Positions 3,724 through 63,599 of a stretch of 64,000 nt of DNA are shown in pieces. The notes beneath the pieces were generated by a model. It did no database searches and was not told the DNA's origin. It saw only the letters and a list, made by a program, of their open reading frames with translations. The stretch covers positions 19,096,001 through 19,160,000 of the forward strand of contig CM052833.1 of NCBI GenBank assembly GCA_028534125.1, written 5' to 3'. The DNA is from Lama glama (Eukaryota). Made by a program: the position numbers and the translations under genes. The stretch's first letter is position 1; the number at the start of each line of letters is the position of its first letter.

Positions 3724-6700
3724 AGTATTTAGAAAAGCAAGAGATAGAATAAAGGGTTTTACTTCTGACAAAACGTTAGATTATGTATCTTGGGAAACAC
3801 TCCCACCATAACACACCTAAAAATGTAAAGCAAAACATTAAAACATCTTGTTTTTTTTTTAATGGAGAGACTGGGGATTGAACCCAGGACCTCATACATG
3901 CTAAGCATGTGCTCTACCCCTGAGCTATTACCCTCCTCCCCTAAAACATGTTTTTATGTGCCTCACTGGCCTTCAAAACCAGGAGATCCTCAGCGGCCAA
4001 GGTTTTTAAGGGAACCAGAATCCAGAGAGGAAAGCGAACGCTGAGGCGGGGGCTCCCCCGGCCCAGGGCCACAGGGCTCCAGCTCTGCCCTCACAGACTC
4101 TCGTGGAGGAAGTGTCAGTGGAGGTTCCCTCGCTGGGTTCCCGGCACCCAGCCGGCCCCGCCCTCCAGCCGCAGGGACCATGGCCTCCCCCCAGAACCTG
4201 GGGACGCGCTACTTTACATGGCAAAGGGGACTCGGCAGATGTGATTACGGGAAGGATCTCGACATGGGGTGATGGTCCTGGATTATCCGTGGGCCAGTGT
4301 CACCACAGCGTCCTGTAAGAGGGACATGGGAGGGTCAGCGTGGGGGCAGGAGGCGGACGAGGAGGAGTGATGAGGGGACGGGCCACGGGCCACGGCATGC
4401 AGGAGCAGGGCCGGCAGTCCCAGCAGGACAGCCCGTGGTGTCTCAGGGTGCCTGACCTGCAGAACCGAGCCGTCTGAGCATAAATCTGCGCTGTCTTTAA
4501 GGCACTCAGCTGGTGGCCACGTGTCTCAGCAGACCCAGGAAACTGGTGGGGCTGGTATTTTGTTTGCTTTGTGAATGAGACGCTCGTTTACTCCCTGGGG
4601 GAGACAGTTCCCGCATAACAGGTTGAAGCCCTCGCGTGGCAGGTGCAGGGCTGGGGCACAGGGTGACGGCAGGATGCTGGGGACGAGATGTGAGGGTCCC
4701 GGGGGCGTGAGGCCCCTCGGTCTGGGACAGCCTGGCTGACGTGAGTCTCACCCGGGGTCGGTCCTTCAGGGTGGGGACGGGCTCCTCGCAGGGAGGGAAG
4801 GTGCTGCCCCCCGGGAGGGGTTCCTCTCAGCGAGGCCACTGTGGTTTGACCTGGACGAGGACTTCTGAGAAGCAGCCGCCAGGGGGCTCCCTGCTTCCAC
4901 GCAAACACCTTAGAGAACAGATCCCTGGGAGGCAGGGGTGGGGTTTGGTGGGGATGATGGAAGCCACACCCCATTAGGTCTCCACCTTGGGGAGGTCATC
5001 TTGACGTTGACGTAAGACCAAGACTTGAGGGGGAGGCTGGGGGAGCGACGTGAAAACTCAGCGTCAGAGAGCTGGGCGGGATCCCAGATGGAGCCCCCGC
5101 ACCCCAACTCTGTCGTCTTAACTTTTAACATTTTCTGAAGGATGGGCAGCCCCCTCCCCTCCCCATCGCGCATGGGAGTTGATGGGCTGAAACCAGGGTC
5201 TCTGGTCGTGTCCACGGAGGGGGGTATCTGGCAGGGAGGGTTTGGGTGCTTTGAGGGGGATGTGCGGTTTAACTTCAAATTTAGTAGATTTTTGCCAGTG
5301 AATTTAACGTTCAGCTACTCCCGACTCCTAAGGTTCACGATAGCTGTGCCTCCGTGTGAATCCTGGACCCTGCAGGCCTGCGTGCGCGGCAAACCCCACG
5401 GACGTGTGCCCAGCACATGTGTCCTGGGACGGCTTTCCCTGCCCTGTTTCTTCAGGGCTTTTGTGGGGAAGATTGTTTATAAACCCAGGATTTACAGGGG
5501 TCTCTGCCCTCTCCCGATGTCTCGGGTAGACGGAGAGTGGGTCCCACGAGTGTCCCCAGGAAGTTGGCGTCCCTCCAGGGCAGGTCCTCCAGCGGAGGAT
5601 GCAGGGCAGCTCCCACACTGGCCTTCGCTCCCGCCGAGGGGTCTGACCCGCCCGCCGGCAGAGTCCCTGTGCCGCGGGACAGCGCTGACCACCGGTCTCC
5701 AGGCAGACGGTGTCACAGCTGCGGGCGGCCCGTCCACGTCCGCCAGATGGCCCTGGGTGACCCTGGTGAGTGCGTCTCCACCACAGGTCACTGGCACAAC
5801 CGTCCACCGATCCCTGCACCCTGAAACCCAGGCCCAAGGCCAGGTCTCCTGCATCTCCTGCATGAGACAAGGCAGCTTAGGGGGTTGGCCCCACGGCAGT
5901 CTGAGCACACTGGTCTGTGACATTCCTCAGATAATTAGCGGCTTAGTCATGAACTGATTTTAAGCTGACAGGAGAGTGGAGACCAGCCTAAACCCAGAAT
6001 CACAGGGTTCGCAGGTCACAGCTGGGTTGGTGCCTAAGCCTCCCTCCCTCCACGGCCCTAGGGTGGGAACTGTGTCCCAGCCCGCCAGCCGCCGAGGAGA
6101 TCGGGGATAGTGAGGGTCACCTTGGACTTGTACAAGCTGAACCCCAGGGACGTCATCGGCTGCCTCAACGTGAAAGCCACCATGTACGGGATGTACTCCG
6201 TGTCCTACGACATCCGGTGCATGGGGCTCAAGGCCCTGCTGAGGTAACGGTCGTCGGGTCCTGGGGGGCCGGGAAGTGGGGGGCGGCTCCCCTGCACCCA
6301 GAGCCCGGCCCTCACGTTGTCCTAAAAGTTCTTATGCCACAGACTTATTCGGAAGACAGTCTTGAGTTCACAATTTGTTTTCCCCCAAGACCATAAAATA
6401 CTAAATAGAAAGAAAAACTAGTAAGTAGAGAGTGAGGACCCGAGTTCGAGCCACGGTTTCCGTCTGGAACAGCAGAGGCCGCATCAGCCCTGGGACTGAG
6501 ACGCCACAACGGGGTCAAGCCGGGGTGTCGCACCCGCGCTCAGAGCCCCGGGTCGTGGGGTCACGACCGCAGGACTGCTAGGACTCCTTCAGCCTGGGGC
6601 CCCTTTCAGGCTGGACTTGACCGATTTCGGCACCGAACCCCACACATCGACAAGGCTGCCAGAGTGAGCAGACAGACCCCCGGGCGTTCCAGTGACTCAG

Positions 6701-17710: not shown

Positions 17711-24139
<6,429 letters not shown>

Positions 24140-26729: not shown

Positions 26730-49665
<22,936 letters not shown>

Positions 49666-50134
49666 GGTCGCCGGCGGCCCCCTCGGACCGCGCCGGACGA
49701 GCAGGCGGCCTCGGATCGCCTGGCAGGCTAGAAGCAGCGGCCACGGGACGGCGCGCCCGCGACCCCACGCTCTCCTCGCCCCCGCCACGCCCCGGCGCGC
49801 TGACGTCAGCCGCACGGGGGCGTGTCCTCGCGCGCAGGAACGCGGCTCCGCCTCCGCTGCGCCCTCCCTTGGCCAGGGACAGAGGCGGGGCCTAAGGGGA
49901 GGAGCTCAGAGGCCGAGGGCGAGGCTGGAGGCGGGCCTAGTGGGGGACTTGGAGGCGATGTGGGCGGAGCTGAGGGTGGGGCTAAGGGAGGGGCGGGGCC
50001 GGGCGCGTGCGGCTGCGCTGGAACGGCTGGAGCACGGGAGGGCCATGCAGAGGTGCTTGAGACCCGACATATGACTCCTTTTCCTCAGCGCGGAGGCCAT
50101 CTTCCACACTTTTGGTCTCTCTCGGTAGGTCCTT

Positions 50135-50245
50135 CGTCAAATACTTTATTGAGCGTCCATTCCTTGGCGCCGTCTCTGTGGCAGGCTCCGTCTGTCCTAG
50201 GCTCTGGAAGAGCCGAGAACGAACAGCCCTGATCTCTCAGAGAGC
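50135..50245. mobile_element. Degenerate L2 3' end between the AFG3L2 promoter and the tandem array
   Basis: caaatactttattgagcg..tgtggcaggctccg..tcctaggctctgg..gaacagccctgatctctc resembles the L2 terminal consensus. Confidence 0.5.
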
Positions 50246-50269
50246 AGTGCAAGTGTCACAACCACGGAG

Positions 50270-53050
50270 CCTAGGGAGACAGTGACGCCGTCAGGAGCCC
50301 TGCGACGCGGCGTGCTTACTCATTGACATTGACATCGACAGCTCTGAAGCGGGGAGGGCGTGGCCTGTGACGTAGGGACCCTGGGGGAGGAGGGCGTGGC
50401 CTTGACGTCATGGACCTGGGGACTGGGATGGCGCAGGCTGTGACGCCAAGAAGCCTGAGACGAGGCTGGCGCACACAGTGACACAAGCAATTCTGAGACG
50501 GGGAGGGCGTGGCCTGTGAAATCGGGGACTCTGGGAGGATGGAGCGTGGCCAATGACGTCAGGGACCCTGAGCCAGGACGGCGCAGACTGTGACGTCAGG
50601 AGGCCTGCGACTGGACCGGTGTAGAGTGACATCAGGAAGCTGGCCATGGAGAAGGAAGACTGTGATGTTGGGAACCCTTTCACAGGGAGGGTGTAGACTG
50701 AGATCAGGAACACTGCGATGGGACGGGTGTAGACTGTGACGGAGAGAGTGCAGACTGACGTCAGGAACCCTGCGACTGATGGCGCGGGCTGTGAGGTCAG
50801 AAACCCCGGGAAGCGGAGGGTGAGACTGTGACCTCGGGAACCCAGCGACAAAGAGGGCGAAGTGTGTGATGTCATGAACCCTGTTAGGAGAATGGTGCAG
50901 ACTGCGACATTAGGAACATGTTGTGGGGAGGGCGCACACTGTGACGCCAGAGACTGCGACTGAGGACGCAGCTGTGACGTCATGAACTCTGATCTGGTGG
51001 GTGTAGACTGTGACCTCAGGAACTCTGCGACTGAGGGCGCAGGTTGTGACGTACACAACCCTGCGACCAGGTGAGCATAGCCTGTGATGTCATGGACTCA
51101 GACGGAGGACGCAGCTGTGACAACAGGGCCTCTGCGACTGAGGACTCAGGCTGTGACCTCAGGAACCCCGTGACAGTGAGGGCAAAGTGAGTGATGTCAC
51201 GAACCATGTTACGATGAGGGTGTGTGAAGGAAAAGCTGGGCTGGGCCTACTCGTAAATCGAAGTTTAACAAGTGTCGGATTACTGACCTGAGTTTTGCTG
51301 GCCTAACTCATAAATCTGTGTGTTGGTTTGCTCATTCCCTCCTCACGTTTTTTTTTTTTTGCTAGTCAGGTAAATTTTCAGAGAGACATATCTGGCCTTG
51401 GAATGTCAGTTTGCTGCCTCCCTGACTCTGCTTTTGTGATAATGATGCTGCTCAGGGTGTTCCATGCCTATTGGCGAATACCCCTAGCTTGTAATTAACT
51501 CTATAAAACCTCATGCACACGTTTTGGAGGTGCTCAGAGCTTCGGAGCAGAAGCCCCTCTGAGCCCAACGGCATAATAAATCTGAGTACTCCAACCTTCC
51601 GAGTGGTGCTTGTTTCTTGGCTGGTCTGTCGTTTCCGTAACAGGTGCAGACTGCGACGTTAGGAACGTGTTGCGGGAGGGCACACACTGACGTCTATGAC
51701 TCTCAGAAAACCCGAGAAGAGAAGGGCCAAGACTGTGACCTGAGGAACCCAGCGACAGGGAGGGCGAAGTGAGTGATGTTGCAAACCCTGTTATGAGGAG
51801 GGTGCAGACTGCGAGGTTAGGAATATATTGCTGGGAGGGCACATACTGTGACGTGATGGACTGTGAGACTGAGGACGCAGGTGTGATACCATGGACTCTG
51901 CGACTGACGGCGCCTGCTGTGATGTCATGACCGCGACAGATTGGTCTCAGGATGTGACGTCATGGGCTGTGCGACGGGGCTCAGTTTGTGGCGTACAGAG
52001 CCCTGCGACCCAGTGGGCGCAGGCAATGACGTCATGGAGTCGGCTATTGAGGACGCAGCTGTGACTACAGGGCGTCTGTGACTTAGGACGCAGGCTGTGA
52101 TGTCAGGGCTTCTGTGACTGAAGACGCAGGCTTTGACAGGGAGGGCGACCGAGAGGGCGAAGTGTGTGATGTCATGAACCCTGTTATGAGGAGGGTGCAG
52201 AATGCAACAGTTAGGAACATGTTGTGGGGATGGCGCACACTGTGACAGGGGCTCTGCGACTGGGTGGGCAAGGCTATGACGTCATAGAGTCTGCGACTGA
52301 GGTCGCAGCTGTGACAACAGGGTCTCTGTGACTGAGGACATAGGCTGTGACCTCAGGAACCCAGCGACAGGGAGGATGAAGTGTGTGATGTCACGAACCC
52401 TATTATGAGGAGGGTGCAGACTGCAACGTTAGGAACATGTTGCGGGGAGGGCACACACTCTGGCGTCAAGGACTCTGAGACGTGGTGGGCGCAGGCTATG
52501 ACATCATGGCATCTGCGACTGGGTGGGCGCAGGTGTGATGTCAGGTACTGTGCGACTGAGGACGTAGTGGTGATGTCATGGACTCTGCGACTGGGTGGGC
52601 GCAGGCTGTGATGTCAGGGACTCTGCGACTGAGGGCTCAGGTTGTGACGTACACAATCTTGAGACCGAGTGGGCGCTGAATGTGATGTCAGGGACTCTGC
52701 GACTGAGGATGCAGATGGTGGCGTCATGACTCTGCGACTTAGAGCGCAGGCTGTGACGTACAGAACCCTGTAACCAAGTAGGCGCAGGCTGTGACGTCAG
52801 AAAGCCTAGGACGATAAGGGCTAAGACTGTGACCTCAGGAACCCAGGGACAAGGAGGGCGAAGTGTGTGATGTCACCAACCCTATTATGAGGAGGGTGCA
52901 GTCTGCGACGTTAGGAACTGTTGCAGGGAGGGCGCACACTCTGACGTCAGAGACTCTGCGACTGGGGACGCAGCTGTGACGTCAGGACCCTGGGATGGGA
53001 GGATGCAGGCTGTGAACTTTGACGGTGAGGGTGTGTAGTGACGTCAGGAA
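50270..53050. repeat. Diverged tandem array, ~36 bp monomer (approximate consensus GACTCTGCGACTGAGGGCGCAGGCTGTGACGTCAGG) with a higher-order unit
   Basis: CTGCGACT...GCAGGCTGTGAYGTCA recurs at 35-37 bp spacing; six copies of a distinctive ~110 bp sub-block. Confidence 0.92.
51223..51642 (+). mobile_element. Solo LTR (420 bp), probably ERV1 / gamma-like
   Basis: TG...CA termini; 4 bp TSD GGTG (51219-51222 and 51643-51646); TATAAAA at 51502; AATAAA at 51575. Removing it restores the repeat text atgagggtg-cagactgcgacgttaggaac. Confidence 0.88.
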
Positions 53051-53969
53051 CCAGGCCCACAGCAGGTAAAACTGTGTGGGGTCAGCCTTGCCTTGAGAGA
53101 AACTTCTGCCCCCAGACATGCTGGGGTAACAGGGCGACTCCTTGTGACCGTATTGCAGAGGGAGGTTGGCTCTGGACCTTGTGTGTTGTGCCTGTGTGGC
53201 TGTGGAGCCTCCTTGTCTGCTTCTGTGGTTACCTCAGTCTGACCAGCGGTATTGACGTCGTGCCGCGGGTTTTGTGAGCAGCTGCGGGTACTACCCCCGC
53301 TCAACCAGAAGGTCCAGGTCTGGCCTGTGGTCGAGAACGAAATTTGCTAGTGAGGCCAGAGAAGTACAGGGTCCTTGTAAAGCATCCGTCGTATTTTAGG
53401 ATAATTTCTCAAGGTCTGGCGTGAGATTCTGTAGACTGGTTTCATGGTTTGTGAAACCTTCCCCTGGGACCCCCAGTCTGAGAGCAACCCCACTCCTGCC
53501 AGGCTGGGTCCTGGTGCCCTTTAAGTCAGGGCCAGGTGACATTACGAATGGTCATACCTGGGCTCCTGGAACTTGGCCGGCCTAGCGTGCATTGCGCACA
53601 AAGTGGGCTTTATCTAAGCAAGGACAGGCCAGAGCCTGTCCCGGGGAAGGGACAGAGGACTTGGGGGTGTTCTGATGAGACAGCTGATTCACTCTTGGGC
53701 CGCAGAAGATCCGGCACCCGGGGTGGGGGGGTGCAGGCGTGGTGCACTTCTGAGGAGCTGAACCACCTCCGTAAGCAGCCAGCCCGAGGCGGAGTGTCCT
53801 TGCAGTGTGGGAAGAGAGGCCCGCCTGCACAGCGGGGCCACTGGGGGATTCGTGCCTAGTGGCTTTTACCTGCCCCCCCCCGCCTTAGGTGGGCCATATG
53901 CTAAACACCTGGCAGCTGGCGTCTTCCCTCCCCACTGAGCGCACCTCCTGACTGATTCCTGTGCGTATT

Positions 53970-60400: not shown

Positions 60401-63400
60401 TGGGAGATGGATTTTTGTCCCTAAATTAAAAAGCTATTCTGCTACAGTAGTCTTCAAACTTACTTATTCTCAGCAGCAGACTTGTAAAAGTGAAATTTGA
60501 ACTCAGTACATAGAACACGAATAGAGAAAAAAACAAACATTAGACTGCTGATTGAAGAACCTCTCGATTTACCCCACAGGTGATCCCCGCAGGTACCAGG
60601 GCTTCCTGGACCTTGACCAGGTGGCTCTGCAGTGGTGACAAGGGGTGGAGCCCCACCCGCCCCGGCCGAGCCGCTCCCGGGCACCCTCGGAGCCATCCTC
60701 GGCTCCCTGAACAAGCAGTCGTCAAGTGCATCCTGTTTGCCAGGTGCTGAGACAGAGCCTGGGCACACAGAACTGAGCCAGGCCCGCCCTCCCAGAGCTC
60801 AGTCTGGTGCGGGACGTCTTTCCAGGCCTTATGGCCCCAGGATTGCCCCAGCTGCCCATTAACAAAGCCTGATCCCGGATCTCACCCCAGAGATGCCAAC
60901 TGCAAAGGTAAGAGAGAGGCACAGAGGCTCACCTGCCTCCTGAGGAGCTCTAGCCTGTGGGAGAGACGAACACACAGGTGTGGAGATGCTAGAACAACAC
61001 GTGGAGCATCGGCGGGGGTGTGGGGAGCAGCCCCAGGAGGACCAAGGAGCAAGGGCACCCCAGGGATGGCCAGCCAAAGCTGGGGGGTCAGGCTGATGGG
61101 ACACCACTGAAGGGCCAGCTAGGAGGCTGTCAGGTAACCCGGAGAGGGGTGACAGTGGACGGAGTGGGGCTGGCGTCCTCACACAGTCATGGCGACGCCA
61201 GCCACCGCTCTCAGGACTTTACGTCCGCCCTCATTCTTTCCCACAAGTCCCACAGGGTCCTACTATTAGTGTCTCCATGTCATGGGTGGTGACTCATGTC
61301 AGGGGAGGTTAGCAGGTTGCAGAAGGGGAGCCAGGACTGGATCCCAGGTTTGTTCCTCTTCAAACCCGTACCTTCAGCTACAGCTGTTACATCATACTGG
61401 CTCTTCCAGAATCTAGGAGAAGGGATGGGTTGAAACAGTCTGTAAGAGGTGAATCCCAAAGGATGACTGGTTGGATGGAGGGTCAGGGTTGCTCTAGCTT
61501 GGGGCGCCTGGGTGACGCCGTGAAGCTGAACAGTGAATCCTGGAAGACGGGGATGCTTGGCAATGATGCATTTGAGGGGAACGCAGGGGATGCCCGCGGG
61601 CAACTGGGCAGGTGGGGAGAGATGGGGTGGAGGTGCAGGCTGGGGAGCTGGGGAAACTGACACGCAGTGAGTCCGCTCAGGGAGAAGGTGCAGAGGGAGA
61701 CGAGAAGGACGGGGAACAGAGAGGGCGCAGTTCCCAGGAGAGAGTGCCCAGCAGTTCTCAGGCAGCACGGGCCGGGGGAGGGGCTGGAGGCCCTCCTCTG
61801 GGAGGAGGTGGGCTATGGAGTGGACGGCAGAGGGCAGTGGGAGGAGCAGGTGTGGACTCTCCCTGACAGGTGCAGAGGAGTGGGCGCAGCCCGCCAGATG
61901 CTGCGGCTGCTCACGGGGAAGGGTGGTCTTTGAAAATGGAGGTGGCAGTGCCGGACTTGAGGCAGGGTTACTGCTCAGCAGTCAGTTACGTGTGCCTGCT
62001 GTATTTCGGAAGTTCCTGGCGGTCATAGCATGTGGTGGTGAGTCTCAGAGGGAGGCGTGTACAAGTGGTGATGTCACCGCAGAAGGCTGACACCTGAGCC
62101 GGGTGTGGCTGGCCGGACCCCACAGCTGTGTGCCAGGTAGACCTGAAGGCACGGCAGGCCCAGAGACAGCGAGACTGGGGCCACCCTCAGTCACGCCTGC
62201 TCTGGGACCCCGGCTCCGCCACGGAGGAGTGTCTGCACTGAGAAGGTTCCTGGCCAGGGCCTCACTTCCCCACAGACTCTCACTCCAGTGTCCTCTGATC
62301 CTCACCACCTGCCCCGTTTCTTCCGCCTCATGCTCAGTACGTGTTTGTGCAAAATGCCTATTGTAAATAATAATGCTTTTTAAAACCAAAACGACAGCCC
62401 TGAGCCCAGAGCCTCACGCAGGGTGTGTTCCACAGCTGGCCTGGCCACACCGCTGGTCCCTGCAGCACGGCCGTGACGGGGACCCTCACAAACGCGGTCC
62501 TTCTGTGAGCTCTGCCTCTGTCAGCCCCGTGAACCCCGCCTGCTCATTAGTACAGCAGGGACGGTGGCACCACCTTGGGAGGATCACCAGGAGGTTAGAG
62601 TCACATGTGGGAACGGCCAGTGAGGCCTCTGGCTGCCCCCTGCTGTCTCCCCTTCACTCGCTCCCCGCGCAGGTGGGCTCCCCACTCCCACCCAGGGTCG
62701 TGCAGTGGCTCAGTAGCCGGCTGATGGAGTCCGTGCCTCCTGCCGCAGGCCACCCTGCGGGAGCCACCCTGTTCTCAAACTAGCATCTCACTTGAATGCA
62801 CTCGACGGCTTTGTGGTAGTGCAGGGTTACAGGCCTAACAAGGAAAAAAAGACTTCCCTAGGTGCAGAAGGGGAAGAGCCTCTCCTCCCCGGGCTGGGAG
62901 CAGCTACTCTCCAACACTTGTCAGTTCCTTGTCTTTTTGAGACGGACGTAAACGTTTGTAAAGGCTGCGCAAGCCTTTTGCCAGTCGCAAACCCAGGACT
63001 GCTTTCTCTCCAAGACTTGGGAGCCATCCCTTTGAAACATCAGCCTCCATCTCCCCTGTGGATGAAGACAGTAGCGAACCCCGTGGCCGCGCCCACTGCC
63101 AGGTGGACTGAGGGTGCGCGCCGACCAGGTGCTGTCGCGGCCCCTCGCGGAGAGCGGGGACGCGGGGGTCGCACGCCTGGTCCACGAGGGGTGGGCTTCC
63201 CGGGGCCTTCAGTCCTGTGCGGGGCGCGCGCCCTGGTCTAAAGCAGGCCTACCCACCACCGACACCGGTTCCCTCCTCTTCCACTCCTGGCGACCTTTCC
63301 TTTGTCCTTCCCCCAGGGGACCCGCCGGGCTGCAGCGGGGCTGGGGGCGTTCAGACAGCCTGAGCCGCGGGAACGCGGACGAGCCGCGGGAACGCGGACG

Positions 63401-63537
63401 AGCCCCGCCCCCGCCCCGCCCCCGCCCGCCGCACACGTGACCGCCCGCCCCGCCCCTCGCGTCCGCACGCCCCGCCCCGCGTGGAGCGGAGCATCCCTGC
63501 TGCAGCATCCCGGGGCCGAGCATCCCCAGCCCGCGCT

Positions 63538-63597
<60 letters not shown>
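63538..63597 (+). repeat. (CGG)20 trinucleotide repeat in the PRELID3A 5' UTR
   Basis: Uninterrupted CGG x20 followed by CG-ATG. Confidence 0.97.

Positions 63598-63599
<2 letters not shown>

Follow-up and report, generated by a model that had tools for sequence, protein, structure and literature searches.

The 64-kb stretch of Lama glama contig CM052833.1 analyzed here (the window; positions are numbered from its first letter) contains exons of AFG3L2, the gene for a mitochondrial quality-control protease, on its minus strand, the promoter CpG island of this gene and, on the upstream side of the island, a tandem array of units of about 36 bp that are centered on the full palindromic cAMP response element (CRE) TGACGTCA or on a variant of it. 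The array is interrupted by a solo long terminal repeat (LTR). The assignment of AFG3L2, first made in a preliminary description of the window from its letters alone, is supported by Walker A, Walker B, the second region of homology and the HEAGH motif, all of which were located by a motif scan in exons farther down the minus strand, and by an exon-by-exon search with single exons, in which the best solved structure for one exon was 6nyy, AFG3-like protein 2 (E 1.8e-28). We assign a probability of roughly 0.6 to the reading that the array is an old single-locus minisatellite that extends the AFG3L2 promoter CpG island and carries its CREs as passengers; the sites look like companions of a slowly decaying repeat and not like sites kept by selection.

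Tandem Repeats Finder reported periods of 35-38 with 63-88% matches, as well as periods of 74 and 109, and a wraparound alignment resolved the array into 64 complete and 2 partial 36-bp monomers, all in a single orientation, with the consensus GGCGCAGGCTGTGACGTCAGGAACTCTGCGACTGAG. Head-to-tail repetition of a 10-100 bp unit at one locus is the organization of a minisatellite. Both the repeat unit and the position of the array agree with the preliminary description, which had placed its start about 600 bp upstream of the AFG3L2 ATG (605 bp as measured); the 2.8 kb given there as its length is indeed a tandem repeat, but 420 bp of it are the solo LTR and the array proper comprises 2362 bp. Proximal monomers (50310-50580) additionally carry a GC/KLF-box-like block, GGGCGTGGCC. 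At a higher level the monomers form a four-monomer cassette with the core types A (TGACCTCA), B (TGATGTCA), C (CGACGTTA) and D (TGACGTCA). Copies of the cassette start at 50819, 51143 (split by the LTR), 51725, 52123 (partial), 52337 and 52819 and are separated by runs of D-like monomers; the mean column identity across five aligned copies is 87%.

Within the unit, an inverted repeat (CGCAG...CTGCG) flanks the palindromic core, and a 293-nt stretch of the array analyzed as single-stranded DNA has a fold z-score of -4.6 relative to shuffled sequences, a strong folding that fits a slippage-prone repeat. No Rfam family matched the array; across the whole window Rfam returned a single hit, a tRNA-like element (3863-3934). 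Two other accounts of the repeat were rejected. Open reading frames of up to 216 aa stay open by virtue of the 36-bp period, but they match no Pfam family and the 35-38 bp variation interrupts them, which speaks against a coding repeat. For an origin from the GC-box-plus-CRE module of the AFG3L2 promoter, the best local alignment score was 24, a value reached in 31 of 300 shuffles. The stretch at 50060-50300, which abuts the left edge of the array, may be an old MIR-type short interspersed nuclear element (TTTATTGAGCG...GGGAGACAGTGAC), and the first monomer may derive from its tail.

Table 1. Coordinates of the array, its interruption and variable sites, and the adjoining AFG3L2 promoter region in the window.
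Feature	Positions	Strand	Remarks
Array, left part, ~27 monomers	50270-51222	+	Perfect CREs at 50403, 50554, 50591, 50756, 50975
Array, right part, ~38 monomers	51647-53055	+	Perfect CREs at 51955, 52027, 52277, 52792, 52942, 52977, 53039
One cassette copy	52337-52487	+	C core here CAACGTTA; D core decayed to TGGCGTCA
Polymorphic CpG transition in core	51085-51092		TGATGTCA in the window; C at 51088 in runs X6 and X8, giving TGACGTCA
Polymorphic indel site	52240-52250		TGTGACAGG in the window; CGT inserted behind 52245 in runs X6, X9 and X15, giving perfect TGACGTCA
Solo LTR, 420 bp	51223-51642	+	TG...CA ends; AATAAA on the + strand
Single perfect CRE TGACGTCA of the promoter itself	49801-49808		136 bp upstream of the ATG; GC boxes on either side
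AFG3L2 promoter CpG island core	49000-50000		GC 76%, CpG observed/expected 0.94
AFG3L2 exon 1, coding part	49549-49665	-	ATG 49665-49663, 39 codons, donor GT 49548-49547; from sequence, open reading frame list and motif scan

To assess locus specificity, contigs of three DNA runs (X6, X8 and X9, which carry three organism labels and represent near-identical samples) were placed on positions 50000-53300. The contigs tile this interval colinearly with 0-3 differences, and their depth over the array equals that over the unique flanks (6.5-7.3, 12-19 and 9-11 in the three runs). Over the other 61 kb of the window the unit does not recur. These results identify the array as a minisatellite confined to one locus and not as a dispersed or high-copy satellite, in keeping with the preliminary description, in which it was not recognized as a named satellite. 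By comparison, contig depth over the LTR reaches 10^3-10^5 in the DNA runs and 10^4 in an RNA library, and dozens of contigs part exactly at its boundaries (51221/51223 and 51642/51643); the family of this LTR is highly dispersed. A 25-base degenerate monomer pattern gave no match in metagenome contigs.

The LTR was inserted into a type-C monomer and has the 4-bp target duplication GGTG on both sides (51219-51222, 51643-51646); it faces away from AFG3L2, and its AATAAA is intact. The LTR and its target duplication lie inside a monomer. The array predates this insertion, the junctions of which are shared by the three DNA runs. The array is also carried by a relative that is ~5% diverged from the window and is represented by the contigs of run X15, an RNA library labelled reproductive system metagenome with 847 million letters in total. 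The distance of ~13% between cassette copies, the shared LTR and the presence of the array in this relative suggest, under an assumed substitution rate, that the array is tens of millions of years old and has not been homogenized recently. Between the three DNA runs only a 3-bp indel and single-base changes were found, with no joints or length differences, for which short-read contigs are a weak test as far as monomer number is concerned. In the relative, contigs over 51022-52108 skip from 51073 to 52090 with 3 letters between and contain two joints that go back; these may reflect a different arrangement of the array or repeat-induced mis-joining of the contig graph.

Exact octamer counts were compared with dinucleotide-preserving shuffles of the window. 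The window contains 13 exact copies of TGACGTCA, against a shuffle mean of 0.72 and a maximum of 4; 12 of them fall within the array (50403 to 53046) and one at 49801, and the exact search returned all thirteen positions that had been counted by hand. Copies with one mismatch number 65 in the window against 18 expected, about 38 of them in the array interval (50.27-53.05 kb). The array further holds 24 TGACG and 15 CGTCA half-sites, and, judged by sequence only, its 12 exact and ~26 one-mismatch sites per 2.36 kb constitute a homotypic CRE cluster. In the preliminary description the array was inferred to be a possible enhancer/promoter or a factor sink, a view that is only partly supported: the excess of sites results from amplification of one unit and not from selection for the motif. 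The number of perfect cores (12) does not exceed the 13.4 predicted by independent per-position identities over 65 monomers, and the octamers CTGCGACT and TGCGACTG occur 14 times each and TGATGTCA 12 times in the same array. In the five cassette copies the D-type cores are TGACGCCA, TGACGTGA, TGAC---A, TGGCGTCA and TGACGTCA, so that one in five is intact, and the four losses are independent.

Recent changes give the same picture within the between-run differences listed (40 of 107), which define the scope of all comparisons of this kind below. The core, with 22% of positions, accounts for nine of 28 differences seen in other runs. Core gains relative to the window are seen at 51088 (T>C), 51923 (T>C) and 52245 (+CGT), and core losses in the relative at 52032, 52946 and 52981; conservation of the CRE beyond the neutral level was not observed among them, nor is there site-specific conservation of the CRE in the array. 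The interchange of TGACGTCA and TGATGTCA corresponds to the deamination route by which CREs are described as differing between mammals (PMC1796609). The decayed cores are strand-asymmetric, with 12 copies of TGATGTCA and 2 of TGACATCA. Strand-biased mutation was considered and rejected as the source of this asymmetry, as the variant was inherited with the cassette and the CpG transitions between runs number 6 versus 4.

The preliminary description had made its functional proposal depend on the core being better conserved than the rest of the monomer, and on this point the core seems mostly unprotected: per-column information is marginally higher in the core, but the number of intact cores matches the prediction. 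The alternative that draws on the former result is a functional homotypic CRE cluster, an upstream enhancer or an extension of the promoter that would be maintained by collective selection, with turnover, for CREB/ATF sites and would raise the expression of AFG3L2 and/or a divergent transcript or make it cAMP-responsive, for example in reproductive tissue with active CREM/CREB. We consider this unlikely. It would account for the density of sites in 2.36 kb (12 full CREs, 12 copies of the lower-affinity CRE variant TGATGTCA (PMC1796609) and 24 TGACG half-sites), for the position of the core as the octamer window of highest mean information content, for the retained CpG-island composition, for the presence of the array in RNA libraries labelled reproductive system, and for the occurrence of site gains as well as losses. 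However, intact sites are not above the neutral expectation, the cassette CRE has been lost in four of five copies, and recent changes strike the core as often as other positions. The location of the sites also disagrees with such a role: they lie at least 738 bp from the ATG and span 0.7-3.4 kb, whereas functional CREs concentrate 1-150 bp upstream of the start site (PMC1796609, the source of the ~150 bp rule applied here). Moreover, the promoter has its own CRE at 49801, which by the same positional rule is the sole TGACGTCA of the window in the canonical promoter-proximal position.

The composition of the array is that of a CpG island, defined as a stretch longer than 200 bp with GC >50% and a CpG observed/expected ratio >0.6. 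The left part (953 bp) has 59.7% GC and a ratio of 0.68, and the right part (1409 bp) 57.1% GC and a ratio of 0.67. The array adjoins the promoter island; in the flank to its right the ratio is 0.43, and in intron 1 it is 0.32. Across the array the GC skew of the + strand amounts to +0.2 to +0.34, rising from ~49.75 kb, and there is none on the AFG3L2 side. Such skew is associated with R-loop formation and is a mark of CpG-island promoters that are unmethylated (PMC3787257). The RNA-library contigs of the relative span nearly all of 50.0-53.3 kb, both non-repeat flanks included, at a depth of 5-20 and ~95% identity, while by our arithmetic uniform carry-over of DNA from a mammalian genome into 847 million letters would give at most ~0.4-fold depth; transcription in the relative is thus the likelier reading. 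Five further RNA-type runs contain 10-14% of words.

Two more alternatives involve a divergent transcript. According to one, the array would be a CpG-island-embedded landing pad for CREB/ATF/CREM under turnover selection that drives or buffers AFG3L2 together with a divergent R-loop-forming transcript in reproductive tissue, as an instance of lineage-specific growth of bidirectional promoters by tandem amplification of a CRE unit. We regard it as quite improbable. According to the other, the CREs are incidental, and it is a transcript or the act of transcription that is functional: a divergent non-coding RNA would run from the AFG3L2 CpG island through the G-rich array and form R-loops that hold the island unmethylated and open. 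The positive skew sustained from ~49.75 kb through the array, the known predisposition of GC-skewed unmethylated CpG-island promoters to R-loops (PMC3787257), the RNA-library contigs across the interval and its flanks, and the strong self-complementarity of the array all fit such an RNA. Nevertheless, contigs cannot reveal strand, start site or level, no Rfam family matches, and upstream antisense transcription, a general feature of CpG islands, may be without function; we give this account little credence.

The mode of CpG decay bears on the methylation state of the array. In the cassette, transitions affect 13.5% of consensus CpG positions versus 5.2% elsewhere (2.6-fold; Fisher p 0.007), and over all monomers the excess at CpG positions is 1.6-fold. 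DNA that is methylated in the germ line shows a CpG transition excess of about 10-fold. By this comparison the array has probably escaped most, although not all, methylation in the germ line. Its CpG-island composition, the mildness of its CpG decay and its appearance in RNA libraries speak against a constitutively methylated germ-line state and against closed chromatin; taken together with the GC skew, they suggest that the array is probably accessible and free of germ-line methylation. Binding of CREB1 is confined almost entirely to CREs in unmethylated CpG islands (PMC9729108), and an array in this state would be a plausible place for incidental occupancy by this factor.

A further alternative is a methylation switch, factor sink or heterochromatin nucleator. 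Under this account the array would be methylated and silent in most tissues and, once demethylated or by way of ATF2/ATF7-type factors, would titrate CRE-binding factors or set a chromatin boundary between AFG3L2 and the next gene. CpG methylation does block CREB1, methylated CRE-bearing repeats are activated once demethylated (PMC9729108), and the many decayed TGATGTCA cores record some deamination of methylated CpG (PMC1796609). Yet CpG decay is only 1.6-2.6 times background, and the ratio of 0.67 retained in so old an array speaks against long-term methylation in the germ line. Genomic CREs number in thousands, so that the 12-27 sites of the array are few and a meaningful sink is unlikely; on balance this account is very improbable. 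Finally, short-read assemblies often mis-size tandem repeats, but an artefact of assembly, or a repeat that was collapsed or expanded in it, is hardly credible here, given independent contigs of three DNA runs that are colinear over 50000-53300 without joints and with even depth, and monomers diverged enough (63-88% matches) for unique assembly.

We return to the preferred reading of the array as an old minisatellite with passenger CREs. The founding 36-bp unit would by chance have held a full palindromic CRE, and unequal exchange or replication slippage, probably favored by the hairpin-prone unit, would have multiplied the unit and thereby the CRE. The CREs would since have been lost and regained like the rest of the unit, mostly through CpG transitions between TGACGTCA and TGATGTCA/TGACATCA and small indels. 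At present the array would lengthen the AFG3L2 promoter CpG island by 2.4 kb of sequence that is CpG-rich, strongly GC-skewed and transcribed. If it is unmethylated and accessible, its 12 full and roughly 15 half CREs would bind constitutive CREB1/ATF-type factors, an occupancy that would mirror that of unmethylated CpG islands in general. The effect on the promoter would be at most a redundant accessory boost or buffer and not a tuned cAMP switch; a modest and redundant contribution of this kind to the AFG3L2 promoter is plausible.

Several points weigh against this reading. The eight core columns have a mean of 1.31 bits versus 1.02 for the other 28, and G13, A14 and A19 are among the six best-conserved columns of the monomer; the core is marginally the best-conserved octamer window, and a weak collective constraint on half-sites may exist. 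Bound factors may be needed to preserve the composition of a CpG island over tens of millions of years. In addition, the recent changes considered come from a partial list of differences, and the case for transcription in the relative is made from strand-blind contig depth set against a calculated level of DNA carry-over.

Around the array, a short series of GC-box-like units (GGCGGGGCCTAAGGGGAGG and similar) occupies 49880-50000, between the promoter CRE and the minisatellite, and the + strand GC skew begins rising within these units. The preliminary description had placed the array between AFG3L2 and a divergent PRELID3A, with CIDEA at the same locus; PRELID3A exon 1 (MKIW...) was not found in the window by the motif scan, and CIDEA was likewise not recognizable there. 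A CpG island at 63.2-63.8 kb (80% GC) may, by synteny, be the PRELID3A promoter. This island includes a perfect (CGG)20.7 triplet repeat at 63538-63599, and a perfect 19-bp duplication (63362-63404) lies just before the repeat, in what is possibly the promoter or 5' untranslated region of the next gene. The Rfam hit mentioned above corresponds to a tRNA-Ala(AGC)-like element on the minus strand (3863-3935; Rfam 46 bits), which was also called by ARAGORN and may represent either a genuine tRNA gene or the head of a short interspersed nuclear element of tRNA origin. The AFG3L2 gene body includes two runs of N (221 and 464 bases) within 23407-24098.

Minisatellites that lie close to a promoter and multiply a factor site form a known kind of element, and methylation-gated CRE repeats are known too. 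Among the former are the HRAS1 28-bp repeat with NF-kB-family sites, the PDYN 68-bp repeat with an AP-1 site, the INS variable number tandem repeat (VNTR) and the MAOA uVNTR. Another is MNS16A at TERT, which multiplies GATA-1 sites next to the promoter (PMC5438627), and in mouse IAP LTRs the CRE is gated by DNA methylation (PMC9729108). Literature searches returned no paper on a CRE minisatellite, or on any VNTR, at AFG3L2. The array shares with the promoter-proximal repeats a GC-rich unit of 10-100 bp, a head-to-tail arrangement at a single locus beside a promoter, and a factor motif in each unit, with the number of sites set by copy number. Unlike them, it is far longer, with ~65 units in 2.4 kb, and it is old, degenerate and organized in part into a higher-order cassette; its motif is a full palindromic CRE; and it shows no copy-number polymorphism in three samples, for which short-read contigs are a weak test.

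A second comparison is with CRE multimers, which include the 19-bp repeats of the human cytomegalovirus immediate-early enhancer, the 21-bp Tax-responsive repeats of HTLV-1 and 4-6xCRE reporters. These likewise have repeated TGACGTCA-type sites near a promoter, with a central CpG that makes binding methylation-sensitive. However, they comprise 3-6 sites within 100-400 bp of the start site, with demonstrated dependence on CREB/ATF, whereas the sites of the array, defined by their sequence, are spread over 2.7 kb at 0.7-3.4 kb from the ATG, and four-fifths of the units are decayed. The array also resembles GC-skewed, R-loop-prone CpG-island promoters (PMC3787257) in being CpG-rich, strongly positively skewed, adjacent to the start-site region and present in RNA libraries, but here the skew extends over a tandem repeat that lies upstream of the gene, on its divergent side. 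With classical satellite DNA it has in common tandem monomers and a higher-order repeat structure; being single-copy by read depth and set in the euchromatic context of a gene promoter, it does not belong to that class.

If the array adjoining this protease gene binds CREB-family factors, it would be a natural counterpart of laboratory multimerized CRE reporters and a clean system for relating site number, distance and methylation state to promoter output. Its main value at present is as a case in which a striking motif excess in a tandem repeat is a product of amplification and not evidence of selection, the two being distinguishable by repeat-internal tests based on per-position identity, cassette copies and differences in relatives. 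The CpG-island character and GC skew retained by so old a repeat bear on how CpG islands grow and are kept unmethylated.

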